Source: Auanema rhodensis (lineage: Eukaryota > Animalia > Nematoda). From it: 64,000 nt of DNA. The notes under the pieces were generated by a model. It saw nothing but the letters and a program-made list of their open reading frames with translations, did no database searches and was not told the origin of the DNA. Where the stretch lies: assembly GCA_964057225.1 (NCBI GenBank), contig OZ059900.1:6944001-7008000 (forward strand). Reading direction: 5' to 3'. A program made the translations under genes and the position numbers. This document shows, piece by piece, positions 36,410 to 58,199 of this stretch. Every line of letters begins with the position of its first letter. Positions within the stretch are counted from its first letter, which is position 1.

Positions 36410-39008
36410 ATTCAATACTTTAATAGACTTGTTTCCGCTTCGTTTGAAACGCAAGTTTTCAGTAACCACAAGGCAATTTGGAAAAATTGATATGGCTTAG
36501 GCTATATATGCACAAGAACATTTAGAGAGAAAAGCGACACGAAAAACGAAATTGTGGCTTAGCAGCTGTGTGCATAGAATGTAAAATAGAAGATTGTGAA
36601 TATTCATCGAGTTGGCATAATGATTAAGCAATGTTTTTTTTGTGCAAAATACAGATATATGATATACATTACTTGATCATTTATTTATATATTCAAAGAC
36701 ATTGCTTATGCGTTTCCGAAAGTTTCAGGAAAAGACAAACAATGAAAGAGAATGATTGTTTCACACGTACTTAACTATATTACTTCTTTATGTAAATAAT
36801 GATATGAAAAAGAGTGTTATAAAAAAAATAATTTTATAAAAGAGTTATGGTTATGAAAAAAAACTATTAATAAGAAAAATATTAAATTAAAAGTTTAAAT
36901 TTAATGATGATGTTGTTGACATTGATGAAGGCAGCATTATTTGGTATAAATTGAGATAGGTCCATTAAATTGTGTGGATATAAACAGAGCGCTCGATGTT
37001 GCTGACGTAGAGGTGTGTTATGGATGAATAGGAGGTCTGAGGGGAGAAAGAGAAGATACGTATAGATATGCGATATAATCGTTCATGTTATGTAGATCAT
37101 GTTATGATTCCGAATTATACACCAAAGGTTAATGTGTGAAAATACATTATTATCTATTTTATTTCGAGAAACAAAAATTATAGTTAGAAAAGCGAAACGA
37201 GCACAAATTGCAACAGATTTATAGAGAAAATTATGAATAGTGTAGATATTGGCAAAAACTTAGATTAATGTTCATAAAATAAATATTAATTCGCTCTAAT
37301 TGAGTGAGAAAATACGTTTGGAGGTTTACAAATTTTCTATCATATCAATCTCTAAATTTTTTTTTCTGGTTCAAAACAATTTGTTCATATCTAAACATTC
37401 CTTTATCATTTTTTTTATCAACATCTATTACTTTCTTCCTCTTTCGTGTTGTATTGTTGTGGATTATCATTTGTTATTTTTCTTTTTTTTTGTTGATTAA
37501 TTACATGTGCACTCAAATTAATTTCTATTTACTAATTAATTTTGAAATTTTTTATATTCATTTTATAATATTATTGATAGCTTCTAGCCTTATAATGAAA
37601 AAAGTAGGTTTTATGTCTTAAATACTTAATTTTTTATTTATTTCTTAATTTGAGAACAAACCAATCTCATATTAAGGCTCATATATATATATAAAATAGG
37701 CTTATTACAGATATTTGGCATGTTGGAAAACCGATAAATCATTCACATTTACTAAACTATTTCACTATTATATACTTATGATACTAGACTGAAGATTATC
37801 TAAAAATAGTTATCTCATTCATGAAACCATGAGACTTACTCTAGTTGAATAAACCTTTGAAAACATTTAATTTTTCCACTAGTGCCTTAATAAACTTGCA
37901 CTTGCATGCTAGGTTCTGTTATATATTACACATTATATTTAAAAATTAGTTTCATTTCGCAGACTCTCATCCATATCTCAGTATATCATTCAAATTAACA
38001 GTTTTCCAGAGAGATGTGCCATCGTTTTCATGACAGATTAACTAGCTATAGAGTTTCATGTCCATTCTCATCTACCGAAGGGGGTACAACGTGAAGTTAA
38101 AACCGGTCTATACGTGGCCTATCTATTCAAATCGGAGAACCATGTGGACATCCACAAATGCATACATATACACGAAAATCATGTGTGAAGAAGAATATGA
38201 TAGGAAATTTAGATACTAAATGTAGAGAGAACTGAAGAAAAGTATGCGAGAAGATAAAGCAAACAGCTAACTACCGGAGTTCTAGAAAGAACTCAGCAAT
38301 TATGGCAAAGGAAATAAGATGAGATCAAAGATATTGAAGTGGCCTGAAAACAACGTTTTATATTATACCATCTGTTCTACAACAACCTATGACCGAAACT
38401 GTAAAAAGAATGTATAGAGCCAATTGTTTCCAGTTTTCTCACTCATGAGAAATCAATAGCATCTTTCTTAAATTTGAGATCAATTAAATTTTTTAGGTTT
38501 AAATAGTTACAAGTTTGCTGTTTTTTGTGGAACAACTTCATATGCTTTCAATATTTTCCGATAGAAAATATTAAAAGACGTCTCTCATGTACACTTTTTT
38601 ATAATGTTTATCTATATACTTATAGAAAACTATAAAATAATATTAATTATATATACATATATATAATATATTATGGGAATAGGAAGGACGCGATAGACGC
38701 GATGTCAAAGAGTAGTACTGACATGACTTCATGAAGGCTATAATCACTTACTCGAAAAAAAAAATTTTTTAAATTTTTTTGTGATTATTATAAAAAAAAA
38801 TTTTTACTATTATATATATATATATAGAATACAGAAGAAATAATTAATAAGAAATCAACGAATTGTCTATATCTGGCACTTATTCGAAGGCACCAATGAA
38901 CGGTACACCCAAAATAATCAAATCAGATTTTTTTATCAAATGAGTGTGTGCACTAGTATGAAGTACGACGCAGATTTTTAATGTTTAGGGTTCTGACGAC
39001 ATTGCAGT

Positions 39009-39192
39009 ATCGCTTCTCGGCCTTTTGGCTAAGATCAAAGTGTAGTAATCGTTCTTATCGAATTAACCTTCGATATGTGTTCCATTGGTTCACAATAAGG
39101 TTAACCGATTTTTGAGACCTGAGGTAGATGCTGGCTTGCTAGCTCCATCTCACGGGTCGACCCGCTCTTGCACTGCTGGCGGGAACGGCCCA
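39009..39192 (+). ncRNA. U2: U2 spliceosomal snRNA, full length, variant just 3' of the branch-point recognition sequence
   Basis: Begins ATCGCTTCTCGGCCTTTTGGCTAAGATCAAAGTGTAGTA; stem IIa ATCGAA...TTCGAT; Sm site GATTTTTG; stem IV loop TTGCACTGC; ends GGCCCA. Confidence 0.95.
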
Positions 39193-39209
39193 TCCCCTTT
39201 GGGGGAGAA

Positions 39210-39356
39210 TAATCGTTCTTATCGAATTAACCTTCGATATGTGTTCCATTGGTTCACAATAAGGTTAACCGATTTTTGAGACTTGAGGTAGATGCTGGCT
39301 TGCTAGCTCCATGTCACGGGTTGACCCGCTCTTGCACTGCAGGCGGGAACGGCCCA
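39210..39356 (+). pseudogene. 5'-truncated tandem U2 copy lacking stem I and the branch-point recognition sequence
   Basis: Near-identical to 39046-39192 with a few substitutions. Confidence 0.9.
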
Positions 39357-39378
39357 TCCCCCCTAGGGGGAGAATAGT

Positions 39379-39477
39379 TGTTCTTATCGAATTAACCTTC
39401 GATATGTGTTCCATTGGTTAACCGATTTTTGAGACTTGAGGTAGATGCTGGCTTGCTAGCTCCATCTCACGGGTCGA
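39379..39477 (+). pseudogene. Third U2 fragment, truncated at both ends, with a 12-nt internal deletion, fused to the 5S repeat unit
   Basis: GTTCTTATCGAATT...CCATTGGTT^AACCGATTTTTG...GGGTCGA, then joins AAGCATGAGCG (same as 42163 onward). Confidence 0.88.
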
Positions 39478-40030
39478 ATAGAAAGCATGAGCGAAGGAAG
39501 TCATGTCTCTTCTGATGAATTGACAGAGTTTAAGTACCAAAAGTAAAGGAATCAGGAGATTAAATGACAGTTTGAAGATGAAAACGTGAATGTTGTAATT
39601 CTGATTTGTATTATTGTTTCTTTTGAGCACCGAGAATTTCAGTGATCATGAATAAAACTTAACAACTGACAGACATCTACTTGGGATTTTATTTATTCGA
39701 TATTTAACTATAAATTTGTTTTTTGTTATAATAAACAATTATTATACTTTGTTTATATTTTTTATTTTATTTATAAATAAATACCTGATAGTACTTGTGG
39801 ATATATTAATGATCATGGAAAAGTTATTTAATATATCATTTCATGTAAACGAAATGAGCAATAGAATATTCATTTCACGATGTAAAAATATAAATGACGG
39901 TTTTTCCTTCATGAGACAATGAATAAAAGAGTATAACGCAGATGTTTTATTTCTGCCAAACGTTGTGCACTTTCTGCTACCACATACAACGAAGTTCACA
40001 ATTATAAGCGGTCAACTAAACTCTAACTTC

Positions 40031-40149
40031 GCTTACGACCATACCACGTTGAAAGTACGCCATCCCGTCCGATCTGGCAAGTCAAGCAACGTTGGGCCCG
40101 GTTAGTACTTGGATCGGAGACGGCTTGGGAATCCCGGGTGCCGTAAGCT
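40031..40149 (+). rRNA. 5S rRNA (copy 1)
   Basis: 119 nt, GCTTACGACCATACCACGTTGAAAG...GTAAGCT, with internal A and C boxes and a TTTT/TTTTT Pol III terminator. Confidence 0.97.
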
Positions 40150-40207
40150 TTTCATTTTTCATTTAAAAAAAAGTATCAGAAAATAGTTATTGACAATGGG
40201 ATATACG

Positions 40208-40226
40208 CTCTATTGATACGCGGGAA
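40208..40226 (+). promoter_or_regulatory. Conserved motif CTCTATTGATACGCGGGAA containing an E2F-like TTCCCGCG site, between 5S and gene A
   Basis: Present in all four units, with diverged versions at ~41818-41836 (+) and ~56880-56899 (-). Confidence 0.45.
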
Positions 40227-40396
40227 TATATTATATTTTAAATAAAAAATGCTCCAAATGTCATAATGATTCTATTTCCAATTATTATTTTTTCTTACAT
40301 ATATAGCTTGTTAAATACTTTTTTTTAATTTAATTCTTTTATTTTTCAGTAAATTCAATTGTCTTAGTTTAACCAAGTAGGTCATCGAAAATCAAA

Positions 40397-40969
40397 ATGG
40401 TTAGTAAATCTTGTTATGTTATTTCCAATTTATATTGTTGTAGAATTTTGTTGATGAATCATTTGTTAATGAAGGAAAAGTTGTGAGAAAAGAGTCAAAG
40501 AGACAATCACAAAATATTCGGCAGAGTAGAAGAAGAAGCGTGATGTCAACTGAGAATAGTAGTAACAAGGTTAGGATATTATATAGTTTATCAATCTATT
40601 AATCGTTTATAATAGAATGCACTGAATCAGAACAACGGAATTATTTCCGACGACGAAGAAATGAATAATCGTATGCTCTTTGATTTTGGTCTACTGACAG
40701 ACGAAACAAAGATGCATAAGAAAATTGAACAAGTTTTAAGGAAAATAGAAATAGCTGAAGAGGAAAACTATAGAAGAGAACGAGAGCATAAGAATAACAT
40801 GTGCAGAGAATATCAAAAGCTTCAATCCCTTATGACTCAACATCTTCGATTTCTTGCCAGTGAAATCGAAGTTTATTTTGATAATAGCATGACAGTTCCA
40901 AAGCCATTGATGACAGAATATGAGGAGACTAGAAGATATTTCAAAGAAATTATGAATAACATGGATTAA
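40397..40969 (+). CDS. 5S-spacer gene A, copy 1: 160-aa protein with a basic disordered N-terminus and a helical/coiled-coil C-terminus; exons 40397-40399, 40444-40569, 40616-40969
   Basis: Upstream TTTTTCAG (trans-splice-like acceptor), an ATG-only first coding exon and two phase-0 GT-AG introns give MNFVDESF...RQSRRRSVMS...SDDEEMNNRMLF...EIMNNMD. Confidence 0.8.
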
Positions 40970-41716
40970 CCATAGCGAGTTGTAAACTATATGCTATATT
41001 CTTTTAAATTATGAATTTTCCCCTTTGCCTTGTAAAATATGTTATTTGTATTCAAATACTTGCTTCTATTCTGTGAATATGCTGTGATTTGTTGTTTTAT
41101 TTTTAAATTAGAATTTGTTTAAGGTTATGATGATTGCAAGACTTTTCACAATTTTTCAATCTTGTACTATTATACAGAATATAAAAATATTATGAATGAT
41201 TAAACCTTTTATATGTTTGACATACCAATATCATCATTTGAACTGACATGGTAGAAATTATTTCGAAAACTACAATTGGTGTAAACTTGAAGCAACATTT
41301 TCATTCACTTCTCAAAAAAAAACTTTAAATTTTGTGTTCATTTTCTCAATAGCATATTAAATGAGTTTAAAGGGCAAATTTGAGGATTAACCTGAAAATG
41401 TTTTCTAGAGAGTCTGGAGAGTACGGTATATTATACTTTTTTCAAATAATTATCTTCTAATGTTTCTCTTTATCTACATATTCATGGCGAACTATGTAAT
41501 GAAAATATATTTGTATATAAATTGAAGAACATGAAGGAAAGAGCCTCAAGGGGTAAAAGTGACATGAATTCATGAAGGTCACAGTTACTCGAAATTGTTT
41601 TGTGACTTTTAAATAAAAAATTTATGTTTATTTCATATTTATATACACCTATATTCAGTAGTTTTTGAGAGAAAAAATGCGAAATCCACCAATTGAACAA
41701 ATCTGACCCCTCACGT

Positions 41717-41740
41717 AAGTCATCCCGGGTGCCGCAAGCC
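41717..41740 (+). pseudogene. Remnant of a 5S rRNA 3' end (mirror copies at ~50842-50865 and ~53101-53124)
   Basis: ATCCCGGGTGCCGCAAGC versus 5S ATCCCGGGTGCCGTAAGC (17/18), followed by flank resembling the 5S downstream flank. Confidence 0.7.
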
Positions 41741-41989
41741 AATTTATCTTTTGCTAAAAGTCTTTGAAGAATTAACAAATCTTTCTAAAAAAATGTTTAT
41801 CGGCAACCACTTGTGTGCTCTAATGATACGCGGGGGATAGTTCGATACTGTGAGCAATTCAAACATTGTATGGATTTAATTAATTTTCTGTACAACTAAT
41901 TTAAGTATTTATTTAATGTTTTTGATCATTTTATTGTAATTGCAGTTGTTTTTAATCTTAAATTCTAATTTCCAGTTGAAGAGGTGACT

Positions 41990-42267
41990 ATGGACAACGA
42001 AAACGATCTCAGTGATGAACAACTTGTGAACAGAAATCAACCGAGTTTGCTTCTCATGCTAGAGCAGAAGAACGGTTAATTCATACCAAACAAGTGAAAC
42101 ATCTCAAACTTCATTGTATGATTATTGATAAAATGAGCGAAATGCTTGAGGAAATAAAAGTAAGCATGAGCGAAGGAAGTCATGTCTCTTCTGATGAATT
42201 GACAGAGTTTAAGTACCAAAAGTAAAGGAATCAGGAGATTAAATGACAGTTTGAAGATGAAAACGTG
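41990..42267 (+). pseudogene. Gene B: frameshifted, diverged paralog of gene A
   Basis: TTTCCAG acceptor, then ATG MDNENDLSDEQ... stopping at 42079. A second frame reads RAEERL...EIKVSMSEGSHVSSDELTEF, which aligns without gaps to gene A EIEVYFDNSMTVPKPLMTEY. Confidence 0.55.
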
Positions 42268-42709
42268 AATGTTGTAATTCTGATTTGTATTATTGTTTCT
42301 TTTGAGCACCGAGAATTTCAGTGATCCTGAATAAAACTTAACAACTGACAGACATCTACTTGAGATTTTATTTATTCGATATTTAACTATAAATTTGTTT
42401 TTTGTTATAATAAACAATTATTATACTTTGTTTATATTTTTTATTTTATTTATAAATAAATACCTGATAGTACTTGTGGATATATTAATGATCATGGAAA
42501 AGTTATTTAATATATCATTTCATGTAAACGAAATGAGCAATAGAATATTCATTTCACGATGTAAAAATATAAATGACGGTTTTCCCTTCATAAGACAATG
42601 AATAAAAGAGTATAACGCAGATGTTTTATTTCTGCCAAACGTTGTGCACTTTCTGCTACCACATACAACGAAGTTCACAATTATAAGCGGTCAACTAAAC
42701 TCTAACTTC

Positions 42710-42828
42710 GCTTACGACCATACCAAGTTGAAAGTACGCCATCCCGTCCGATCTGGCAAGTCAAGCAACGTTGGGCCCGGTTAGTACTTGGATCGGAGAC
42801 GGCTTGGGAATCCCGGGTGCCGTAAGCT
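42710..42828 (+). rRNA. 5S rRNA (copy 2, C17A variant)
   Basis: Identical to copy 1 except C>A at 42726. Confidence 0.93.
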
Positions 42829-43075
42829 TTTCATTTTTCATTTAAAAAAAAGTTTCAGAAAATAGTTATTGACAATGGGATATACGCTCTATTGATACGC
42901 GGGAATATATTATATTTTAAATAAAAAATGCTCCAAATGTCATAATGATTCTATTTCCAATTATTATTTTTTCTTACATATATAGCTTGTTAAATACTTT
43001 TTTTTAATTTAATTCTTTTATTTTTCAGTAAATTCAATTGTCTTAGTTTAACCAAGTAGGTCATCGAAAATCAAA

Positions 43076-43648
43076 ATGGTTAGTAAATCTTGTTATGTTA
43101 TTTCCAATTTATATTGTTGTAGAATTTTGTTGATGAATCATTTGTTAATGAAGGAAAAGTTGTGAGAAAAGAGTCAAAGAGACAATCACAAAATATTCGG
43201 CAGAGTAGAAGAAGAAGCGTGATGTCAACTGAGAATAGTAGTAACAAGGTTAGGATATTATATAGTTTATCAATCTATTAATCGTTTATAATAGAATGCA
43301 CTGAATCAGAACAACGGAATTATTTCCGACGACGAAGAAATGAATAATCGTATGCTCTTTGATTTTGGTCTACTGACAGACGAAACAAAGATGCATCGGA
43401 AAATTGAACAAGTTTTAAGGAAAATAGAAATAGCTGAAGAGGAAAACTATAGAAGAGAACGAGAGCATAAGAATAACATGTGCAGAGAATATCAAAAGCT
43501 TCAATCCCTTATGACTCAACATCTTCGATTTCTTGCCAGTGAAATCGAAGTTTATTTTGATAATAGCATGACAGTTCCAAAGCCATTGATGACAGAATAT
43601 GAGGAGACTAGAAGATATTTCAAAGAAATTATGAATAACATGGATTAA
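43076..43648 (+). CDS. 5S-spacer gene A, copy 2
   Basis: Same structure, offset 2679 bp; MHRK instead of MHKK. Confidence 0.8.
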
Positions 43649-44571
43649 CCATAGCGAGTTGTAAACTATATGCTATATTCTTTTAAATTATGAATTTTCC
43701 CCTTTGCCTTGTAAAATATGTTATTTGTATTCAAATACTTGCTTCTATTCTGTGAATATGCTGTGATTTGTTGTTTTATTTTTAAATTAGAATTTGTTTA
43801 AGGTTATGATGATTGCAAGACTTTTCACAATTTTTCAATCTTGTACTATTATACAGAATATAAAAATATTATGAATGATTAAACCTTTTATATGTTTGAC
43901 ATACCAATATCATCATTTGAACTGACATGGTAGAAATTATTTCGAAAACTACAATTGGTGTAAACTTGAAGCAACATTTTCATTCACTTCTCAAAAAAAA
44001 ACTTTAAATTTTGTGTTCATTTTCTCAATAGCATATTAAATGAGTTTAAAGGGCAAATTTGAGGATTAACCTGAAAATGTTTTCTAGAGAGTCTGGAGAG
44101 TACGGTATATTATACTTTTTTCAAATAATTATCTTCTAATGTTTCTCTTTATCTACATATTCATGGCGAACTATGTAATGAAAATATATTTGTATATAAA
44201 TTGAAGAACATGAAGGAAAGAGCCTCAAGGGGTAAAAGTGACATGAATTCATGAAGGTCACAGTTACGCTTTCTAGCAAACCACAAAGATAGAATATAAT
44301 GTAAATGAATGCACATTGATATGTTCGAAATGAAGGTAAAAATATAAAAATACTTAATTTTTAAACTTTACGACTGATGAATTATAATAGAAAAACAAAA
44401 AATTAGACATCCTTCAGTTATAGTGTAACATGACTTCATTGATTGGATATTGGCATATTTGTATTTTAGATTGAGTGTATATAACATCTTAGTCTAAATG
44501 ATATGTTCTAGGTACAACGCATACATTCAGTGGATCGGATCCTCTACAGGTTAGTTTCAAAAATAAAAAAA

Positions 44572-44653
44572 TCTCTCTCTCTATACATCTCTCTCTCTCT
44601 ATACATCTCTCTCTCTCTCTATACATCTCTCTCTCTCTATACATCTCTCTCTC
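44572..44653 (+). repeat. Compound (CT)n-ATACAT microsatellite: 4 units here, 5 units in the mirror copy at ~48333-48433
   Basis: Read directly from both arms. Confidence 0.9.
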
Positions 44654-44825
44654 ACTTGCTTACTTTCTCACCTACTCTCTCATCAGTTCTTCTCTGAATA
44701 TCTGTAATCAACTGTGAATGTTTCTGAAATTCTGGAGAAATTGTGAACTATTTACTGATATTTCAATGTTTTTTTACATTTCTGTCGAAACTGTAGATCC
44801 TAAATTATTTGTCAACTCTAAGAGT

Positions 44826-44899
44826 ATTGGCGTGATGACCAAGTGGTTATGCATGAAGTCTTTCCCACTATCATCGAAAGTTCGATTCCTTCAATGAAT
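44826..44899 (+). pseudogene. tRNA-like relic with Pol III A and B boxes
   Basis: A-box-like TGACCAAGTGG within a D-arm hairpin (ATGACC/GGTTAT) and T-arm GAAAG-TTCGATT-CCTTC. The anticodon and acceptor stems do not pair. Confidence 0.55.
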
Positions 44900-45629
44900 T
44901 TTGAAAAAATCAATACTAATTCTAAAATCTAAAAAACGTTTGGATGGATTTGGCTTGTAAAAAATGATATCTTTTGATGTTTATAGACGTATAAAACTTG
45001 TTCCACGCCGTTTTTTTGAATTCTCTTTCTTCGTATGAACAGCGAATGAATATATCTAGTCCAATGCAAAAATTCATAACGATATCTCTGTTGGCACAAA
45101 AGTTATAACTTTCTAAAAATAAGACAAAAAGCAAAAACATTGACTTTGAACGGCTTTATCTTCTTAACCAATGAGTTTTCTCAAAATTTTTCAAAAGATT
45201 CGAGCTCTACTCGTAAAGATCTTTCGAATGAGTTGTTGATCTAAAGGATTAGAGCATTTTGAAATTTTAAGAAATAAAGAATTTGACCAATTTAGAATTA
45301 ATAAAATAAAATTTTTCAGTTTTCTAACATTTAAGTATTGCATTTGAATAAACTAAACACGCTGATTTTAAATTTGAAAACCGAATTTCTCAATTCTCAC
45401 GCTGAAAGGAGTTGTGAGACTTTGAAATTTTTGGCGTTAATCATTCAGAAGGCTATAACTTCGTTAAAATGGAATTTCAGAGACTCCCACTTAGTTTAAT
45501 CGTCTTCTCCGTCTTTCATTCATTTTGAATGTTGTTTTCACAACTTTTCTACAAAATTTTTATTTTTTGTTAAAATTGTTCAATTCCATGTACTCCCCCC
45601 TTACCTACTTTTCGGTCATAACAATCGAT

Positions 45630-47260
45630 ATCATTGGAATTCTCAAAGCATTTTCTAATTTCTTTGTTAACTATGTGGTACAATCTAGACTCAATAACGC
45701 TCAGATATGAAACTTTCATTGGAATTCTTAAAACATTTTCTACTTTTCTTGTTAACTCTGTGGTATAATCAAGACTCAATAACGCTCAGATATGAGTCTT
45801 TCATTGGAATTCTCAAAACATTTTCTAATTTGTTCGTTAACTATGTGGTATAATCAAAACTCAAAAACGCTTAGATATATCATATAAGATGAGTCTTTCA
45901 ATGGAATTCTCAAAGCATTTTCTAATTTCTTTGTTAACTATGTGGTACAATCTAGACTCAATAACGCTTAGATATGAAACTTTCATTGGAATTCTTAAAA
46001 CATTTTCTACTTTTCTTGTTAACTCTGTGGTATAATCAAGACTCAATAACGCTCAGATATGAGTCTTTCATTGGAATTCTCAAAACATTTTCTAATTTGT
46101 TCGTTAACTATGTGGTATAATCAAAACTCAAAAACGCTTAGATATATCATATAAGATGAGTCTTTCAATGGAATTCTCAAAGCATTTTCCAATTTCTTTG
46201 TTAACTATGTTGTAATCAAGACTCAAAAACGCTTAGATATATCATATAAGATGAGTCTTTCAATGGAATTCTCAAAGCATTTTCCAATTTCTTTGTTAAC
46301 TATGTGGTATAATCAAGACTCAATAACGCTTAGATATATCATATAAGATGAGTCTTTCAATGGAATTCTCAAAGCCTTTTCCAATTTCTTTGTTAACTAT
46401 GTGGTATAATCAAGACTCAAAAACGCTTAGATATATCATATAAGATGAGTCTTTCAATGGAATTTTCAAAGCATTTTCCAATTTCTTTGTTAACTATGTG
46501 GTATAATCAAGACTCAATAACGCTTAGATATATCATATAAGATGAGTCTTTCAATGGAATTCTCAAAGCATTTTCCAATTTCTTTGTTAACTATGTGGTA
46601 TAATCAAGACTCAAAAACGCTTAGATATATCATATAAGATGAGTCTTTCAATGGAATTTTCAAAGCATTTTCCAATTTCTTTGTTAACTCTGTGGTATAA
46701 TCAAGACTCAATAACGCTCAGATATGAGTCTTTCAATGGAATTCTCAAAGCATTTTCCAATTTCTTTGTTAACTATGTGGTATAATCAAGACTCAATAAC
46801 GCTTAGATATATCATATAAGATGAGTCTTTCAATGGAATTCTCAAAGCCTTTTCCAATTTCTTTGTTAACTATGTGGTATAATCAAGACTCAAAAACGCT
46901 TAGATATATCATATAAGATGAGTCTTTCAATGGAATTTTCAAAGCATTTTCCAATTTCTTTGTTAACTATGTGGTATAATCAAGACTCAATAACGCTTAG
47001 ATATATCATATAAGATGAGTCTTTCAATGGAATTCTCAAAGCATTTTCCAATTTCTTTGTTAACTATGTGGTATAATCAAGACTCAAAAACGCTTAGATA
47101 TATCATATAAGATGAGTCTTTCAATGGAATTTTCAAAGCATTTTCCAATTTCTTTGTTAACTATGTGGTATAATCAAGACTCAATAACGCTTAGATATAT
47201 CATATAAGATGAGTTTTTCATTTGATTTCTAAAAATATTCACTAATTTCCTTGTGTTGTT
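45630..47260 (+). repeat. Satellite of ~17-18 monomers of 85 or 97 bp
   Basis: TTAACT(A/C)TGT starts at 45667, 45752, 45837, 45934, 46019, 46104, 46201, 46296, 46393 and on to 47157. The long form carries a 12-bp insert (ATCATATAAGAT). Confidence 0.97.
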
Positions 47261-48086
47261 ACTATGTGTTGTATGATACATCTAAGCGTTATTGAGTCTA
47301 GATTGTACCACATAGTTAACGAAGAAATTAGAAAACGTTTTGAGAATTCCAATGATATCGATTGTTATGACCGAAAAGTAGGTAAGGGGGGAGTACATGG
47401 AATTGAACAATTTTAACAAAAAATAAAAATTTTGTAGAAAAGTTGTGAAAACAACATTCAAAATGAATGAAAGACGGAGAAGACGATTAAACTAAGTGGG
47501 AGTCTCTGAAATTCCATTTTAACGAAGTTATAGCCTTCTGAATGATTAACGCCAAAAATTTCAAAGTCTCACAACTCCTTTCAGCGTGAGAATTGAGAAA
47601 TTCGGTTTTCAAATTTAAAATCAGCGTGTTTAGTTTATTCAAATACAATACTTAAATGTTAGAAAACTGAAAAATTTTATTTTATTAATTCTAAATTGGT
47701 CAAATTCTTTATTTCTTAAAATTTCAAAATGCTCTAATCCTTTAGATCAACAACTCATTCGAAAGATCTTTACGAGTAGAGCTCGAATCTTTTGAAAAAT
47801 TTTGAGAAAACTCATTGGTTAAGAAGATAAAGCCGTTTAAAGTCAAAGTTTTAGCTTTTTGTCTTATCTTTAGAAAGTTATAACTTTTGTGCCAACAGAG
47901 ATATCGTTATGAATTTTTGCATTGGACTAGATATATTCATTCGCTGTTCATACGAAGAAAGAGAATTCAAAAAAACGGCGTGGAACAAGTTTTATACGTC
48001 TATAAACATCAAAAGATATCATTTTTTACATGCCAAATCCATCCAAACGTTTTTTAGATTTTAGAATTAGTATTGATTTTTTCAAA

Positions 48087-48160
48087 ATTCATTGAAGGAA
48101 TCGAACTTTCGATGATAGTGGGAAAGACTTCATGCATAACCACTTGGTCATCACGCCAAT
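48087..48160 (-). pseudogene. tRNA-like relic, mirror copy
   Basis: Reverse complement of 44826-44899. Confidence 0.55.
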
Positions 48161-49355
48161 ACTCTTAGAGTTGACAAATAATTTAGGATCTACAGTTTCG
48201 ACAGAAATGTAAAAAAACATTGAAATATCAGTAAATAATTCACAATTTCTCCAGAATTTCAGAAACATTCACAGTTGATTACAGATATTCAGAGAAGAAC
48301 TGATGAGAGAGTAGGTGAGAAAGTAAGCAAGTGAGAGAGAGATGTATAGAGAGAGAGAGATGTATAGAGAGAGAGAGAGATGTATAGAGAGAGAGAGATG
48401 TATAGAGAGAGAGAGATGTATAGAGAGAGAGATTTTTTTATTTTTGAAACTAACCTGTAGAGGATCCGATCCACTGAATGTATGCGTTGTACCTAGAACA
48501 TATCATTTAGACTAAGATGTTATATACACTCAATCTAAAATACAAATATGCCAATATCCAATCAATGAAGTCATGTTACACTATAACTGAAGGATGTCTA
48601 ATTTTTTGTTTTTCTATTATAATTCATCAGTCGTAAAGTTTAAAAATTAAGTATTTTTATATTTTTACCTTCATTTCGAACATATCAATGTGCATTCATT
48701 TACATTATATTCTATCTTTGTGGTTTGCTAGAAAGCGTAACTGTGACCTTCATGAATTCATGTCACTTTTACCCCTTGAGGCTCTTTCCTTCATGTTCTT
48801 CAATTTATATACAAATATATTTTCATTACATAGTTCGCCATGAATATGTAGATAAAGAGAAACATTAGAAGATAATTATTTGAAAAAAGTATAATATACC
48901 GTACTCTCCAGACTCTCTAGAAAACATTTTCAGGTTAATCCTCAAATTTGCCCTTTAAACTCATTTAATATGCTATTGAGAAAATGAACACAAAATTTAA
49001 AGTTTTTTTTTGAGAAGTGAATGAAAATGTTGCTTCAAGTTTACACCAATTGTAGTTTTCGAAATAATTTCTACCATGTCAGTTCAAATGATGATATTGG
49101 TATGTCAAACATATAAAAGGTTTAATCATTCATAATATTTTTATATTCTGTATAATAGTACAAGATTGAAAAATTGTGAAAAGTCTTGCAATCATCATAA
49201 CCTTAAACAAATTCTAATTTAAAAATAAAACAACAAATCACAGCATATTCACAGAATAGAAGCAAGTATTTGAATACAAATAACATATTTTACAAGGCAA
49301 AGGGGAAAATTCATAATTTAAAAGAATATAGCATATAGTTTACAACTCGCTATGG

Positions 49356-49928
49356 TTAATCCATGTTATTCATAATTTCTTTGAAATATCTTCTAGTCTC
49401 CTCATATTCTGTCATCAATGGCTTTGGAACTGTCATGCTATTATCAAAATAAACTTCGATTTCACTGGCAAGAAATCGAAGATGTTGAGTCATAAGGGAT
49501 TGAAGCTTTTGATATTCTCTGCACATGTTATTCTTATGCTCTCGTTCTCTTCTATAGTTTTCCTCTTCAGCTATTTCTATTTTCCTTAAAACTTGTTCAA
49601 TTTTCCGATGCATCTTTGTTTCGTCTGTCAGTAGACCAAAATCAAAGAGCATACGATTATTCATTTCTTCGTCGTCGGAAATAATTCCGTTGTTCTGATT
49701 CAGTGCATTCTATTATAAACGATTAATAGATTGATAAACTATATAATATCCTAACCTTGTTACTACTATTCTCAGTTGACATCACGCTTCTTCTTCTACT
49801 CTGCCGAATATTTTGTGATTGTCTCTTTGACTCTTTTCTCACAACTTTTCCTTCATTAACAAATGATTCATCAACAAAATTCTACAACAATATAAATTGG
49901 AAATAACATAACAAGATTTACTAACCAT
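49356..49928 (-). CDS. 5S-spacer gene A, copy 3
   Basis: Inverted copy with intact ORF and splice sites. Confidence 0.8.
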
Positions 49929-50175
49929 TTTGATTTTCGATGACCTACTTGGTTAAACTAAGACAATTGAATTTACTGAAAAATAAAAGAATTAAATTAA
50001 AAAAAAGTATTTAACAAGCTATATATGTAAGAAAAAATAATAATTGGAAATAGAATCATTATGACATTTGGAGCATTTTTTATTTAAAATATAATATATT
50101 CCCGCGTATCAATAGAGCGTATATCACATTGTCAATAACTATTTTCTGATACTTTTTTTTAAATGAAAAATGAAA

Positions 50176-50294
50176 AGCTTACGGCACCCGGGATTCCCAA
50201 GCCGTCTCCGATCCAAGTACTAACCGGGCCCAACGTTGCTTGACTTGCCAGATCGGACGGGATGGCGTACTTTCAACGTGGTATGGTCGTAAGC
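50176..50294 (-). rRNA. 5S rRNA (copy 3)
   Basis: Reverse complement of copy 1. Confidence 0.97.
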
Positions 50295-51613
50295 GAAGTT
50301 AGAGTTTAGTTGACCGCTTATAATTGTGAACTTCGTTGTATGTGGTAGCAGAAAGTGCACAACGTTTGGCAGAAATAAAACATCTGCGTTATACTCTTTT
50401 ATTCATTGTCTCATGAAGGAAAAACCGTCATTTATATTTTTACATCGTGAAATGAATATTCTATTGCTCATTTCGTTTACATGAAATGATATATTAAATA
50501 ACTTTTCCATGATCATTAATATATCCACAAGTACTATCAGGTATTTATTTATAAATAAAATAAAAAATATAAACAAAGTATAATAATTGTTTATTATAAC
50601 AAAAAACAAATATCGAATAAATAAAATCCCAAGTAGATGTCTGTCAATAAATTGATCAAAAACATTAAATAAATACTTAAATTAGTTGTACAGAAAATTA
50701 ATTAAATCGATACAATGTTTGAATTGCTCACAGTATCGAACTATCCCCCGCGTATCATTAGAGCACACAAGTGGTTACCGATAAACATTTTTTTTTAGAA
50801 AAATTTGTTAGTTCTTCAAAGACTTTTAGCAAAAGATAAATTGGCTTGCGGCACCCGGGATGACTTACGTGAGGGGTCAGATTTGTTCAATTGGTGGATT
50901 TCACATTTTTTCTCTCAAAAACTACTGAATATAGGTGTATATAAATATGAAATAAACATAAATTTTTTATTTAAAAGTCACAAAACAATTTCGAGTAACT
51001 GTGACCTTCATGAATTCATGTCACTTTTACCCCTTGAGGCTCTTTCCTTCATGTTCTTCAATTTATATACAAATATATTTTCATTACATAGTTCGCCATG
51101 AATATGTAGATAAAGAGAAACATTAGAAGATAATTATTTGAAAAAAGTATAATATACCGTACTCTCCAGACTCTCTAGAAAGCATTTTCAGGTTAATCCT
51201 CAAATTTGCCCTTTAAACTCATTTAATATGCTATTGAGAAAATGAACACAAAATTTAAAGTTTTTTTTTGAGAAGTGAATGAAAATGTTGCTTCAAGTTT
51301 ACACCAATTGTAGTTTTCGAAATAATTTCTACCATGTCAGTTCAAATGATGATATTGGTATGTCAAACATATAAAAGGTTTAATCATTCATAATATTTTT
51401 ATATTCTGTATAATAGTACAAGATTGAAAAATTGTGAAAAGTCTTGCAATCATCATAACCTTAAACAAATTCTAATTTAAAAATAAAACAACAAATCACA
51501 GCATATTCACAGAATAGAAGCAAGTATTTGAATACAAATAACATATTTTACAAGGCAAAGGGGAAAATTCATAATTTAAAAGAATATAGCATATAGTTTA
51601 CAACTCGCTATGG

Positions 51614-52186
51614 TTAATCCATGTTATTCATAATTTCTTTGAAATATCTTCTAGTCTCCTCATATTCTGTCATCAATGGCTTTGGAACTGTCATGCTATT
51701 ATCAAAATAAACTTCGATTTCACTGGCAAGAAATCGAAGATGTTGAGTCATAAGGGATTGAAGCTTTTGATATTCTCTGCACATGTTATTCTTATGCTCT
51801 CGTTCTCTTCTATAGTTTTCCTCTTCAGCTATTTCTATTTTCCTTAAAACTTGTTCAATTTTCCGATGCATCTTTGTTTCGTCTGTCAGTAGACCAAAAT
51901 CAAAGAGCATACGATTATTCATTTCTTCGTCGTCGGAAATAATTCCGTTGTTCTGATTCAGTGCATTCTATTATAAACGATTAATAGATTGATAAACTAT
52001 ATAATATCCTAACCTTGTTACTACTATTCTCAGTTGACATCACGCTTCTTCTTCTACTCTGCCGAATATTTTGTGATTGTCTCTTTGACTCTTTTCTCAC
52101 AACTTTTCCTTCATTAACAAATGATTCATCAACAAAATTCTACAACAATATAAATTGGAAATAACATAACAAGATTTACTAACCAT
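51614..52186 (-). CDS. 5S-spacer gene A, copy 4
   Basis: Inverted copy offset 2258 bp from copy 3. Confidence 0.8.
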
Positions 52187-52433
52187 TTTGATTTTCGATG
52201 ACCTACTTGGTTAAACTAAGACAATTGAATTTACTGAAAAATAAAAGAATTAAATTAAAAAAAAGTATTTAACAAGCTATATATGTAAGAAAAAATAATA
52301 ATTGGAAATAGAATCATTATGACATTTGGAGCATTTTTTATTTAAAATATAATATATTCCCGCGTATCAATAGAGCGTATATCCCATTGTCAATAACTAT
52401 TTTCTGATACTTTTTTTTAAATGAAAAATGAAA

Positions 52434-52552
52434 AGCTTACGGCACCCGGGATTCCCAAGCCGTCTCCGATCCAAGTACTAACCGGGCCCAACGTTGCTTG
52501 ACTTGCCAGATCGGACGGGATGGCGTACTTTCAACGTGGTATGGTCGTAAGC
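52434..52552 (-). rRNA. 5S rRNA (copy 4)
   Basis: Reverse complement of copy 1. Confidence 0.97.
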
Positions 52553-53455
52553 GAAGTTAGAGTTTAGTTGACCGCTTATAATTGTGAACTTCGTTGTATG
52601 TGGTAGCAGAAAGTGCACAACGTTTGGCAGAAATAAAACATCTGCGTTATACTCTTTTATTCATTGTCTCATGAAGGAAAAACCGTCATTTATATTTTTA
52701 CATCGTGAAATGAATATTCTATTGCTCATTTCGTTTACATGAAATGATATATTAAATAACTTTTCCATGATCATTAATATATCCACAAGTACTATCAGGT
52801 ATTTATTTATAAATAAAATAAAAAATATAAACAAAGTATAATAATTGTTTATTATAACAAAAAACAAATATCGAATAAATAAAATCCCAAGTAGATGTCT
52901 GTCAATAAATTGATCAAAAACATTAAATAAATACTTAAATTAGTTGTACAGAAAATTAATTAAATCGATACAATGTTTGAATTGCTCACAGTATCGAACT
53001 ATCCCCCGCGTATCATTAGAGCACACAAGTGGTTACCGATAAACATTTTTTTTTAGAAAAATTTGTTAGTTCTTCAAAGACTTTTAGCAAAAGATAAATT
53101 GGCTTGCGGCACGCGGGATGACTTACGTTAAAAGATCTCTTTGAAGATGTGCAACAAATTCTTATAGATTGTTTTGAAACGGTAATGAGCTCTATATTAG
53201 TTATCAGATTTTGATTGTTTATATTGAATTCTCAAACAGAAGAGAATTATCAAATCAAAGAATTATCACTCAGGAACGGTTATAAATTTTTTATAAAAAA
53301 AAAAGAAAAAGTTCAAATACATATACGTTTTCTTACATCACAATACGAATTTACTAATATTTTCTTTCAGCTCTCTTTGGAAATCAGTAGAATGTTGTTT
53401 TCGCGTTTTCGGCAGCCTACAATGTTTATTGATTAAAAAAATTTAATGAAAATTT

Positions 53456-56408
53456 TTAGAACTTGTTGATATTATATTGTATAGAAGTTTCCCATCTATT
53501 GATTATCAGTAAGAAAGGGATATAGTCTCTTGCTACATCATCAGAACAGAGGTTATAAAGCAAGTTCATGATAGCGCGTAAAGTTTTGTAATTTTGGGGA
53601 CGATACGTTTTCCGCTGAAATGCGACAATATAGGATAACGAAGTAAAGTTTGAACTAACAACAAACTTTTGAATAATTGGGTGGTAGTCGATTTTTTGAG
53701 ATTTTTTAAGTGCCTTGTTATAAGGATAATCATCGCAAGGTTCATAGTTCAGATCGCCAATCCTCTTATAATATCTATTCTCGATCAATATAGGCAAGGA
53801 CTAGTAGAAAGAATGTATACTTTAGAACTTCAATATTATTAGATACCGTGCTAATGAGATCAAATTGCAATTGATTCAGAAGACCTCGAATATCCTGCTT
53901 CAATACATGGTTTTGCAAAATATTCATCAAATCTATCTCATCAATGTATTTTTCGGTGAAAGCAAAAACACAAACCTGAATAAAAAAGTGGATAATTGCT
54001 TCAAGTATAGTAAACTTACTGATGCGTACAATGCCACAACCTTTTTGTTAAACTTATCCAAAGAAATTGTTTTATAATTCCATAACTTTATATATTCTTG
54101 TGGTATCTTTGTACAGGTTAATATTACAGGTTGATCAGATTGGGCAATTAAATTTTCTAATTTACGGTAAAAACCTTGATCGTACTTTTTAAAATAGATG
54201 TCAATCTGTAAAAAAAAGCTAATCTACTGAATAAACTTAAAGTTCCATCTTAAATTTACATAAACTTACATCTTCAACTAAAAGTATTGCGTTTTTTGTG
54301 GATTTATTTCGTAGGCCTATTGATTTTGGAAAAAAACATCTTTTGGAAAGTGTCGAGTGTTCTATACCTACATCCACGTTCTGTATTATACAGTCGAAGT
54401 CAGCAGCTATAGAATGAACCTACGTGAAGAAAATACATATTCTAAATATCAACAAACTATACTAACTAATGATGTTTTTCCTGAGCCGGTTGGCCCTTCA
54501 ATTATGAAAGGAATTGGAGAAAATGTCTTCTCATTCTTGTTGCGATACGATTCTGATGAATATACATCTATACGTTTCATCTATGTTTCTTACAAACTTT
54601 TGTTTCGTTGCTTCCATCTCTCTTCAACAAAGTTCTTGACTTGATCGCAAGCACTTTTGCTTCCTAACCAGAGGGCTGATGCAGTAGGCTGTAATGCTTG
54701 TGGCCATGCAAGAGTCTTAGCTTTTTGGCGACTGTTCAAAGCATGATTATACCAGATAGCTCGAATATCCTGATTAAATCTGTTGCCATTTTATTTGACT
54801 GAATTCAACTGAAAGCTTACACATTGATCACTTCTTTCATAGTTTTAGAACTTATAACAGGTAGAAAATGAGCTTTACTTTTTGTTGAATCCACCTTTTT
54901 ATAAAATGAGATTGGAGTTCTCTTTGGAGGTAACGTCCATGTCTGAACATTTTTTACATTAATTTATGATTTAAAAAGTCAGAAAATCTTACTGGATCTA
55001 TTACAGGCTCGATATATGTAGGTAAAACATTGAAACGTGAAAACGGAGCGTGATCATACTTTCTGTGAACTGAATAATAAAATTTGAGCATCATCTTGAA
55101 AATATATTTCTGACCTTTCATTTTTAAGGGATGTGTAGGTAATGTTCTGCTAATTTTCTGTTCTACAAATGTTTTGTTCTCAAGAACCTAAACTAATTAA
55201 AATATGTACAAGCCTTTATAAAACTATTGCATATAGATGACATATTTCAAAAATAACTGTTCACAAACCTTTTCACACGTAACACTAATACAGTTTTCAG
55301 CTGCCGATTTAGATGATTCGAATGGTGAAACTTGCTCAGCGGGACAACTTTTATCTAGATTTGAAGATCCTTTTTTAATTGTAGAAGTTTCTGTGTTTAT
55401 AATGGGCAATTTTGCAGTATCGTTACAAATTTCCTTTTTAGAGCAAATTATTTTCTCTTCAACACTACTATTTGAAGATGCTTCACAATTATCAATAAAG
55501 CCATTTAGCTTTACAGTATTCACAGAACTAAGTCGTTTAGGATCAGAAAACTTTTTCTGAATTTAACAAAATGAATATGAAAATTGATGATGACAACTTA
55601 CAATTTGTTCTGTTTTGGTTCTTCTTGTTCTTAGTCCTGCAGTCTGCAATTATATAATTTTAGATTTCATATAATTCATTATGTAAAATCAGAGAATGTG
55701 AAACTCACAGTTGAGTTTTTCTTTCGAGGCGTTTTGTCAGCTTCGTTTTTAATATTTTTAATTTTTTCAGCAAACACACTAAAAAAGAACATAAATAATT
55801 GATTAAAAATAAGAAAATACTTTAAATATAACGGACCATTGTTACGTCGATCTAATTTTTCAATCTAAAATTAACTGAATAATAACGTTAACAACCACAA
55901 TTTTTACCTTTTCACGACTATTTGGAGTTAATTCCAGTTCTTTAGACACTTTAATATTATGAGTCTGAACCAACATTAAATGTTTGCAAATCAAAGAGCA
56001 ATATGGCATATTACCTCTGTACCATCGTCCTCATCAATAGGGGTATCGATTGGCATTCGAACAACGCCTTGCTTCTGTAAAATGAAAGTTAATAACTATT
56101 ACATATTACTTATAACACATACCCAACCATGCAATGGAGCTATTATACAAACTGAATTTCTATCGTGAAACTTAACGGTTCTCACATTCTATATGATGCT
56201 AAGCGTATATATCAGAAATATATTTTGTAGACGTACCTTTTCTTTTGGACCAGCAATTGAGCGAATAATGGGCTTTATATCTTCACTTAAGTGTTCTACA
56301 TCAACCTAAAAACAACTTTACTTTTAAAATAAATTATCAAAGAATAACCAAAATATTCTGTTTATTTGCAGCATTTTCTCTTAATGCAAGTGATCTTCTC
56401 GTAATCAT
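53456..56408 (-). CDS. ATAD5/ELG1-like RFC large subunit (AAA+ PCNA unloader)
   Basis: WPQALQP...LG (resembles the WTEKYQP box), Walker A IEGPTGSGKTSLV, Walker B region LLVEDIDIYF...GFYRKLENLIAQSDQPVILTC, and C-terminal DYIPFL. Multi-exon; ATG at 56408. Confidence 0.8.
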
Positions 56409-56971: not shown

Positions 56972-57043
56972 GGTACCCAGTATTTTTACGCCATCTCTGA
57001 TTCAAGTACTACCAGAGCCCAACGTTAGTCGGCTGTTGTAAGC
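56972..57043 (-). pseudogene. Decayed 5S rRNA with an internal deletion
   Basis: Minus strand GCTTACAACA...AACGTTGGGCTCTGGTAGTACTTGAATCAGAGATGGCGTAAAAATACTGGGTACC is collinear with 5S nt 1-10 and ~58-112. Confidence 0.75.
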
Positions 57044-57184: not shown

Positions 57185-57549
57185 TCATTCAATTCTAAAT
57201 TTCACTTTCATCTCCTCAAACTTTTCATTTATTTCATCCAGTGCTTCCAGAATGCTTTCTGGCAATGGCGTACCAGCGTCATCATTAGTTCGAATCAGAT
57301 CCTCAAAGGAGGTAATAGTTGTTACAAGAAGAGGTTGAAACTCGCGATACTCAACCAATAACAATGCACGTTTTTCTTTTTCTTTTGTAATGACATTGTC
57401 TATTACATCAAGTAGCTGTTTGAATTGTGTCATTGAAGCGTACATCTGTAAATCCATTGTATAAGTTATAAGTCATGAATGTTTTAACTTACCCTTCTTA
57501 ATTCAAAAGGTGAGGATGGGTTAACATTCTGTAAATATTGGCTGAACAT
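57185..57549 (-). CDS. Gene C: intact ~105-aa helical protein, diverged paralog of gene A; exons 57549-57493 and 57445-57185
   Basis: CTCTTCAG acceptor upstream and a phase-0 GTAAG...TTTACAG intron. Aligns without gaps to gene A at 12/59 identities (manual count). The N-terminus could extend further. Confidence 0.7.
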
Positions 57550-58199
57550 AATCTCAATTCTGTAAGAACTATGCAAAGTTGAGCAATCCTGAAGAGAGCA
57601 GAATCAATGAATTGAAAAAACTTTTTGAAAATTTTAGTGTTAAAAATAACTTTATTTCAGATGAAATAGATTGTTTTTCTTTTTCTTTGTTTCAAATAAT
57701 GAAAATTATTTTCTCGATTTCAGTAAAAATCAATTAGGACAGAAAAATTTTAGTAAAGTATAGTTCGAATTCGATGTTTTTGGGTAAAATGAAAATTTTC
57801 GAGCTTTTAAGAATTTCTAAAATTGAAAAACTATTAAAAAACTCAGACGCAATTGACTCTACTCAGTAAACTTTAAACCTACTAATAGGACCCTGCGTCC
57901 TTTATGAGCAATACTGCGAAAAACACGATCAGATTTCAAATTCAGCGGGGATCATATAAAAATTGGTCAAATTTCTGCTCATAATTAGTGAAGTTCGTTT
58001 ATTTATGTTATGTATAGAGTTTTCGTGATTTTTAGTGTGTAGTTCTAACTTGTTCAAAAATGTACAAATCATTCTCAAATCACCCATTCTGTTTCGAGAT
58101 TTTCAATTAATCTACCCCTGTCAATCTGTAGAGATCCATATGCAACTTATAACGTTCGAGAACGGTCCACTGAAATTTTTTACAAAAACTTATCGTATA

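Follow-up and report, generated by a model that had tools for sequence, protein, structure and literature searches.

A 5S-bearing palindrome of Auanema rhodensis as a probable member of a C8 palindrome family with mutually recombining arms

The ~13.4-kb palindrome described here is, in our reading (probability roughly 0.7), a genuine member of a family of ~29 palindromes on contig C8, in which recombination between the two arms maintains their similarity. It lies in a 64,000-nucleotide stretch of Auanema rhodensis DNA (contig OZ059900.1, positions 6,944,001 to 7,008,000; hereafter the window, whose own numbering we use). C8 is probably the X chromosome, and its layout fits that of the X as described in the A. 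rhodense paper.

Anatomy of the palindrome and its cargo

The self-comparison proposed by the earlier note, which we performed by inverted-repeat search and self-BLAST, revealed a left arm at 39667-45706 (6.0 kb) mirrored by a right arm at 47280-53128 (5.8 kb), reproducing nearly to the base the 13.4-kb imperfect palindrome with 5S and gene A in both arms that the note had described. The inner symmetry, first placed at 42395-~45706 versus ~47280-50609, was recovered as 42346-45706 versus 50646-47280 (98.6% identity over 3379 aligned columns), and the outer symmetry, first placed at 39716-41928 versus ~50655-52867, as 39667-41936 versus 52904-50645 (99.0% over 2272 columns). Arm-to-arm identity is thus 98.6-99.0% counting indels and 99.5-99.9% counting substitutions only. 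Comparison of the sequence beyond 39667 with that beyond 53128 showed flanks without mirror symmetry.

Each arm carries two 5S genes and two copies of gene A in tandem units, whose periods (2679 bp in the left arm and 2258 bp in the right one) are the same as those given previously. On the left (+ strand), outer unit L1 (39667-41936) contains a 5S gene at 40031-40149 and gene A at 40397-40969, and inner unit L2 (42346-44267) contains a 5S gene at 42710-42828 and gene A at 43076-43648. The 409-bp segment X (41937-42345, +) separates them; it occurs in the left arm only and is absent at the corresponding right-arm positions 50645/50646 and 52903/52904. A partial segment X copy (39477-39666, +), likewise without a right-arm counterpart, is part of the left tandem unit (direct repeat 39477-41588 = 42156-44267). 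On the right (- strand), inner unit R1 (48737-50994) contains a 5S gene at 50176-50294, gene A at 49356-49928 and a tail at 50645-50994, while outer unit R2 (50995-52904) contains a 5S gene at 52434-52552 and gene A at 51614-52186. The outer end of the right arm is a 226-bp fragment of a third unit (52903-53128, -), which forms a third mirror pair with 41713-41936 (96.5%).

All four 5S genes were full-length Rfam matches (RF00001, 103.5-107.5 bits against a gathering cut-off of 38); three are identical and the fourth, that of L2, carries C17A. A U2 snRNA gene (39009-39198, +; RF00004, 146.7 bits) lies close to the outer end of the left arm, with a 5S gene 833 bp downstream, and is followed by truncated U2 repeats with a period of 164 bp (39199-39476, +) that match 164-bp arrays in both arms of a palindrome at C8:10.187 Mb. 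A permissive Rfam search of 38000-54500 returned 5S, U2 and one chance hairpin match, and nothing else, and no tRNA genes were found. Gene A, with exons in L1 at 40397-40399, 40444-40569 and 40616-40969 and GT..AG boundaries at both introns, is intact in 10 copies with dN/dS of 0.15-0.43. Its largest exon, used as a query, gave no Pfam match, no word-search match and no usable Atlas match, and we regard gene A as a predicted small orphan gene.

Inward of the units, both arms continue as non-coding segment C, on the left at 44268-45630 (+; 18-bp microsatellite at 44572-44653, invariant motif at 45586-45608) and on the right at 47356-48736 (-; motif at 47378-47400, microsatellite at 48333-48432). 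The left arm then enters a tandem array of 85/97-bp monomers (45631-47205, +) comprising ~17 copies in a single orientation, with a 473-bp higher-order repeat whose copies are 100% identical; repeat searches found a lone monomer in the right arm (47280-47355, -). The true palindrome loop is the 74-bp spacer D (47206-47279, strand unassigned), a degenerate monomer cut at ~position 62 and joined to an inverted monomer end, with a TAGAT/ATCTA dyad at the join that can be read directly from the sequence. The turn-around previously placed inside a degenerate monomer at ~47240-47280 is therefore confirmed and located, but, contrary to what had been proposed, the satellite does not occupy the centre of the palindrome: the array lies entirely on the left side.

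The arms are not exact copies. Single-base differences at 45118, 45133, 45139 and 45148 fall where the earlier note had seen them (around 45115-45150), and the microsatellite, reported as 4 versus 5 units, measured 4.4 copies on the left and 5.4 on the right. Overall, the two copies of segment C differ by 7 single bases and one 18-bp unit, the adjoining monomer (45648-45702, mirrored at 47280-47355) differs at 4 positions, and the four 5S/gene A units differ from one another at 2-7 of 1922 positions. Arm divergence declines from the centre outward, from ~5% in the monomer through 0.5% in segment C to 0.1-0.3% in the units.

The palindrome family on C8

Two sister loci, C8:7.118 Mb and 6.872 Mb, have counterparts of the 74-bp spacer, of the 85-bp monomers beside it and of the innermost ~1.2 kb of both arms, and match the centre (core, monomers and spacer D) at 92-97%. 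They match this locus only from 44442 inward and have 130 bp more outward in common with each other, and the flanks around this ~2.9-kb palindromic module are unrelated at all three loci. The core, in a more divergent form (~70% identity), occurs at ~29 loci, all on C8 between 5.65 and 10.33 Mb, and matches to segment C were restricted to C8, always as facing + and - copies. Searching 181 Mb for the 23-nt motif gave 28 forward and 28 reverse matches, every one in the same C8 interval and nearly all in facing pairs 284-2470 bp apart; as a control, the reversed pattern had zero matches in the same 181 Mb. Among the family loci that we fetched, 23/28 have arms of 0.5 kb to >5 kb with 86-99.8% identity (22 besides this locus), and the arms of two members extend beyond the 10 kb fetched. 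The family core comprises ~0.6-1.2 kb of non-coding DNA per arm and ends in the invariant motif, the two copies of which face each other over a short, asymmetric spacer.

That so many other loci have such arms speaks against an assembly artefact, in which a chimeric or misjoined contig would have created a false inverted duplication. The assembly was made with hifiasm from HiFi reads of an inbred line, with coverage of 146-236x in gene-rich regions. The earlier note had argued from the differences between the arms that a read chimera was improbable, and this argument was upheld: they differ by single bases, by 12-bp, 18-bp and 421-bp indels, and in extent. A false duplication would also call for two precise misjoins, since each flank is unique and the two are unrelated. 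We consider an artefact very unlikely.

The earlier note attributed the palindrome to fold-back repair, breakage-fusion or template switching at the satellite. The spacer lends this idea some support, since a truncated monomer followed directly by an inverted one is the geometry expected of a template switch in a tandem array, and it fits an old event inside a short monomer array; the arms, moreover, are 98.6-99.9% identical. However, a local and recent event at this satellite is not supported, because the centre is common to the sister loci, and the core palindrome recurs at ~29 loci. Monomers of 85/97 bp were found genome-wide at this locus and its two sisters only, and the array nowhere else; it is a one-sided and young amplification of the innermost left-arm monomer. 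Nor is arm identity uniform, being lowest at the centre. A single recent event that made the whole 13.4 kb here at a pre-existing satellite is therefore improbable, and for the inner 1.3 kb it is already contradicted.

The cargo also follows a family pattern. Nine other family palindromes have 5S genes at most 5 kb away, U2 and 5S were found together at four further C8 loci, and all 16 palindrome-adjacent 5S genes (4 here, 12 elsewhere) face the centre. Gene order is U2 U2 5S | 5S U2 U2 at one locus (L012), 5S | 5S at another (L022), and geneA U2 5S ... 5S U2 geneA at two more (L009 and L010), the centre being marked by the bar or dots. The converging 5S arrays that the earlier note had thought unusual are real, for gene A as well as 5S, but convergence of 5S is the family norm. 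We conclude that 5S is ancestral cargo of the palindrome family.

Many copies of a non-coding core, and a ~2.9-kb module in unrelated flanks, might also be produced by transposition of a foldback-type mobile element whose inverted terminal repeats were very long and which had taken on 5S, U2 and gene A. Against this, the outer ends of 17 loci had neither a common terminus nor target-site duplications, the arm ends varying by locus; every copy lies within 4.7 Mb of one contig; and inspection by eye of the spacers and ORF lists examined disclosed no transposase-like ORF. Transposition of this kind is accordingly a doubtful account of the family.

Within the core, a motif of 23-29 nt is invariant amid DNA that is otherwise ~70% identical, and core copies differ by 180-196 substitutions (~33%) versus only 0-2 indel columns over ~575 bp. 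The invariance of the motif and the near-absence of indels point to a function, which, as judged from sequence comparison, may be that of a hairpin or small-RNA source or of a chromosome-specific protein-binding element, with the 5S genes as bystanders. The confinement of the motif to one chromosome, at a mean spacing of ~80-120 kb, would suit such a unit, but there was no conserved RNA fold and no coding signal, and segment C, searched against the genome, matched the palindrome family alone, with no target gene elsewhere of the kind expected for a hairpin RNA. We view a functional core as a minority possibility, and one compatible with our preferred reading of recombining family palindromes.

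Several specific identities for the core were rejected. As coding sequence it lacks three-base periodicity (variable sites number 106, 108 and 108 in the three codon phases), has stops in six of six frames, and gives pN/pS of 0.6-1.2 in nearly every frame. As structured RNA, its inward-reading strand folded at only -8.9 kcal/mol over 585 columns in RNAalifold with almost no covariation; as a known RNA family, it had no match in the permissive Rfam search of 38000-54500; and SL1 spliced-leader genes sit in separate arrays elsewhere. More speculatively, the ~29 cores, which are spread over the gene-bearing part of the putative X, could be chromosome-specific cis-acting docking sites that mark it for a chromosome-wide process, with 5S, U2 and gene A as passengers. 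We think this improbable; if true, the process could be dosage compensation or the unusual X segregation of Auanema. A search for DNA-elimination break sites with a guessed pattern, a telomere seed plus its mirror copy, gave three sites, none of them on C8.

Recombination between arms and history of the locus

A tree of 56 core copies placed both arms of a locus as sisters at most loci, and arms were reciprocal nearest neighbours in 13 of 27 pairs, several of the non-reciprocal pairs coming from recently duplicated or decayed loci. At this locus the cores of the two arms are 99.1% identical, compared with 97.1-97.6% for the best other locus. Spacer D copies that are 97% identical are inverted at one sister locus (L001) and in the same orientation at the other (L002), and another subfamily has a 207-bp spacer that is found in either orientation among 7 loci at 96-99% identity. 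Because arms are sisters within most loci and spacers are flipped between sister loci, we conclude that the arms recombine. Gene conversion would homogenise the two arms of a locus and crossovers would flip its spacer, while separate loci would meanwhile have diverged to ~70% identity, with 5S, U2 and gene A carried as cargo beside the core and facing the centre as at other loci. Repeated independent formation of palindromes, which might likewise yield sister arms, is unlikely and is disfavoured by the shared centre and orientation.

The outer arms, which bear the 5S genes, represent growth peculiar to this locus, and we infer the following order of events and copying mechanism for it. The inner palindrome (44442-45706, spacer D and 47280-48562) would have been inherited from an ancestor common with the 6.872 and 7.118 Mb loci. 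Its arms would then have been extended, or replaced outward, by sequence from a tandem 5S/gene A array, either by arm-to-arm conversion beyond the old boundary or by snap-back synthesis primed by the inner palindrome. The template was probably the left arm, since it retains the ancestral 2679-bp unit beside U2; the presence of segment X, which the 2676-bp tandem units at C8:9.33 Mb also contain, is the ancestral state. Relative to that array, the 12-bp and 421-bp deletions, which the two right-arm units have in common, are derived. The right arm would thus have lost 421 bp and 12 bp in a third step, with units reshuffled by unequal exchange, and finally the innermost 85-bp monomer of the left arm would have been amplified to 1.6 kb. 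The arms of L001 and L002 also slightly overrun their shared unit, and some outward growth is an assumption.

Comparison with known systems

In nematodes and other animals, 5S rDNA is linked to small-RNA genes (SL1, U1, U2 or U4), and the U2 gene adjoining 5S at this locus resembles such arrangements. Unlike long head-to-tail 5S arrays, each arm here has 1-2 copies in mirror pairs, and unlike in 5S-SL1 linkage, the SL1 genes occupy very large arrays of their own. 5S gene arrays are among the tandem repeats eliminated from body cells (A. rhodense paper). If elimination covers the majority of 5S genes, small clusters of this kind may be important to the somatic 5S supply, provided that they are retained in body cells.

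Like foldback transposons and palindromic MITEs of nematodes, the family consists of a multi-copy, non-coding, nearly fully palindromic module in unrelated flanks, but it differs from them in its lack of conserved termini or target-site duplications, its variable arm extent and its restriction to a single chromosome. The Tetrahymena rDNA palindrome and yeast models provide examples of snap-back inverted duplication and of palindromic amplification with short inverted repeats as primers, and the spacer here is similar, with a truncated repeat unit next to an inverted one. In contrast to those systems, the centre is old and inherited, both flanks run on as normal unique sequence, and nothing indicates a terminal deletion, a dicentric chromosome or telomere healing. 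The 5S-bearing outer arms are explained most economically if the palindrome grew outward from an inner inverted repeat that already existed.

The closest parallels are the large sex-chromosome palindromes with arm-to-arm gene conversion, namely human Y P1-P8 and those of the primate and mouse X (PMC8327919, PMC8600007, bioRxiv 10.1101/800185), with a convergent case in willow (PMC7023750). As in these, inverted arms ~99% identical surround a unique spacer, the arms are nearer to each other than to paralogous copies, the spacers are unstable and invert, and the cargo consists of multi-copy lineage-specific genes; if C8 is the X, restricted recombination of the chromosome is a further likeness, as the A. 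rhodense X recombines in females only (A. rhodense paper) and segregates abnormally. In contrast to these palindromes, the arms here, at ~6 kb, fall short of the mammalian working definition (8-10 kb or more), and Pol III and snRNA genes (5S, U2) form part of the cargo. A further difference is that ~29 palindromes share one non-coding core and invariant motif, and therefore the palindromic module itself multiplied. Our model covers the upkeep of the arms; the spread of the module to ~29 places with unrelated flanks lies outside it. This locus would retain stages both of outward palindrome growth and of the birth of a satellite from its innermost 85 bp. Gene-conversion palindromes being best known from mammalian sex chromosomes, a ~29-member family with one common core and frequent spacer flips in Auanema, a cultivable and genetically crossable nematode, would provide a compact and tractable parallel to them.

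Architecture of the window palindrome

Self-comparison of the window bore out the coordinates of the ~13.4-kb imperfect palindrome described in the earlier note, with a left arm at 39667-45706 and a right arm at 47280-53128. Each arm carries two units, each made up of one 5S rRNA gene (Rfam scores 103.5-107.5 bits) and one copy of the small gene A, and inward of these units lies segment C, 1.36 kb of non-coding sequence. The tandem period is 2679 bp in the left arm versus 2258 bp in the right because segment X (409-421 bp) is missing from the right arm. Between the arms we found a satellite of ~17 monomers of 85/97 bp in a single orientation (45631-47205) and the spacer D (47206-47279), a 74-bp degenerate monomer, and then one inverted monomer. 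The left arm is adjoined by a U2 gene and truncated U2 repeats of 164 bp each, and the flanks outside the two arms, when compared, showed no relation to each other. Elsewhere in the window, a single 1947-aa ORF at 9129-14972 (+) with internal direct repeats offset by ~141 bp (11124-12782) had no Pfam match, and an 857-bp direct repeat (58194-59050 versus 59874-60729, 99% identity) lies in a region that the earlier note had named ATAD5-like.

The assembly holding the window comprises 180,911,798 bases in 112 contigs. The germline assembly of the A. rhodense inbred line APS4 (180.9 Mb) was built from PacBio HiFi reads with hifiasm and Hi-C, and coverage in gene-rich regions is 146-236x (bioRxiv 10.64898/2026.08.27.747507). 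Because the line is inbred and coverage is at this level, the palindrome is unlikely to stem from misjoined haplotypes or from one chimeric read. Contig C8, which contains the window, may be the X chromosome, and the window segment may be kept in somatic cells, as judged from the layout of C8, which fits the description of the X in the same preprint. The text of that preprint does not mention the C8 palindromes; it applies "palindromic" only to a 29-bp break motif, and "inverted repeat" is absent (bioRxiv 10.64898/2026.08.27.747507).

A palindrome family on contig C8

In a genome-wide comparison, copies of segment C were confined to C8, each plus-strand copy facing a minus-strand copy. Alignment of their homologous cores, which in the window span 45066-45640 and the mirror 47346-47920, revealed an invariant 23-nt motif, CCATGTACTCCCCCCTTACCTAC. 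Genome-wide, this motif is matched 28 times in forward and 28 times in reverse orientation, all at C8 5.65-10.33 Mb and nearly all in facing pairs 284-2470 bp apart; a reversed control pattern gave 0 matches genome-wide. The family comprises ~29 loci on C8, one block of them at 5.66-7.12 Mb and another at 9.14-10.33 Mb, with a mean spacing of 80-120 kb. We fetched 30 loci, consisting of 28 family loci and two of a tandem array at 9.33 Mb, and inverted arms, seen at 23 of the 28, ranged from 0.5 kb to >5 kb with 86-99.8% identity. Satellite monomers occur at three loci only: the window and its sister palindromes L001 (C8:7.118 Mb) and L002 (C8:6.872 Mb), where one or two monomers per arm are mirrored about the centre. 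When outer arm ends were compared across 17 loci, they varied between loci, with no common terminus and no target-site duplication; the family therefore looks unlike a transposon with defined ends.

At two loci, L021 (C8:9136777-9146776, 97.4% identity) and L025 (C8:9423177-9433176, 99.7% identity), the arms extend beyond the 10 kb fetched, and these palindromes may exceed that of the window in size. Two others, L014 (C8:5996879-6006878) and L015 (C8:6007940-6017939), lie 11 kb apart within one larger inverted duplication, their left and right flanks swapped between them.

A tree of 56 core copies resolved four subfamilies with ~30% difference between them. Between subfamilies, the core differed by 180-196 substitutions (~33%) versus 0-2 indel columns over ~575 positions, and tests of the core found no coding signal and, for the inward-reading strand, no conserved RNA fold. 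The core appears to be under a length constraint that neither kind of signal explains. On the reverse strand, the motif resembles a strong 5' splice site (AG/GTAAGG), a likeness in sequence alone.

5S, U2 and gene A cargo

Nine further family palindromes have 5S genes at <5 kb. Counting the window's four, all 16 of the 16 5S genes adjoining palindromes are oriented to the centre, and the order is mirrored at L012 (U2 U2 5S core, core 5S U2 U2; arms 99.66% identical), L022 (5S on either side; arms 99.8% identical) and L009/L010 (geneA U2 5S core, core 5S U2 geneA). The earlier note had taken converging 5S genes to be a departure from the usual arrangement; given these results, convergence is normal for this family, of which 5S genes are habitual cargo.

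Other arrangements were also seen. L006 (C8:10183001-10191000) has on both arms an array of 6-7 repeats, U2 and truncated U2, with a 164-bp period, an intact 5S gene being left only on the right arm. L003/L004 (C8:9325461-9335446) holds four tandem 2676-bp units of 5S and gene A in a plain head-to-tail array, and the fetched units are 99.97-100% identical among themselves and 90% identical to the window units. In the main 5S arrays on contig C3 (12.09-13.47 Mb), the strand switches in large blocks, plus then minus then plus, and inverted 5S blocks therefore exist at megabase scale too. For the SL1 spliced-leader genes, the leader plus GTA had 3665 matches genome-wide; among the matches listed, those on C3 (6.74 Mb and 14.13 Mb) lie in tandem, the periods being 252 and 341 bp.

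The gene A model has three exons, 160 codons and introns of 44 and 46 nt with GT..AG ends. Ten close copies remain intact; their dN/dS is 0.15-0.43, and dS between loci is ~0.16. Gene A and its distant relatives are found on C8 only. Searches for homologues with the largest exon as query returned no Pfam match, no word-search match and no usable Atlas match. We regard gene A as genuine, albeit an orphan in these searches. Outside the palindrome, a 55-bp 5S gene relic (56972-57026, minus strand) sits beside a 90-aa ORF, which we call gene C (57185-57457, minus strand). This ORF matches ORFs at two loci also matched by gene A, yet not gene A itself, and gene C may be kin to the gene A family by this indirect route.

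Proposed history of the locus and probable exchange between arms

The window has sequence in common with L001 and L002 only from 44442 inward. Because L001 and L002 share with each other 130 bp more outward, a stretch in place of which both window arms carry 5S-unit sequence, we infer that in each arm the outer 4.8 kb with the 5S genes is specific to the window locus and later than its split from L001/L002. Arm-to-arm differences decrease outward, from 4/75 positions in the monomer to 7/1363 in segment C and 2-7/1922 in the units, which fits younger outer arms. Each of the four tandem units of 2676 bp at C8:9.33 Mb contains segment X and a stretch of 12 bp, suggesting that the left arm retained the ancestral unit; both are deleted from the two right-arm units, and the right arm terminates in 226 bp of a third unit. 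In the simplest reading, the left arm would have served as the template: conversion running beyond the old boundary, or snap-back synthesis started from the inner palindrome, would have copied it into the right arm, which deletion and unequal exchange would then have altered. Within the satellite, 300-nt stretches are 100% identical at 473-bp spacing, and it appears to have been amplified recently, as a higher-order repeat, on one arm. The mechanism proposed in the earlier note may apply to the centre, as an old event, and perhaps also to the outward extension, but it does not hold for a recent origin at the satellite.

In the core tree, arms of the same locus pair as sisters at most loci. They are reciprocal nearest neighbours in 13/27 pairs; of the pairs that do not fit, several involve a recent duplication of the locus or an arm that has decayed. 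A copy of the window's spacer D lies inverted in L001 (97% identical), and another, in L002, is oriented as in the window. Similarly, the 207-bp spacer of the 354-bp-spaced subfamily occurs both ways round, three loci having one orientation and four the other, with 96-99% identity. In primate and mouse sex-chromosome palindromes, crossover between arms flips the spacer and gene conversion keeps the arms alike (PMC8327919, PMC8600007, bioRxiv 10.1101/800185). As judged from these comparisons, the arms of the family palindromes appear to recombine with each other, and the window structure appears to be a palindrome of a known kind, maintained by gene conversion. Unusually for such palindromes, here the palindromic module itself has become multicopy on a single chromosome, and its cargo includes 5S and U2 genes.
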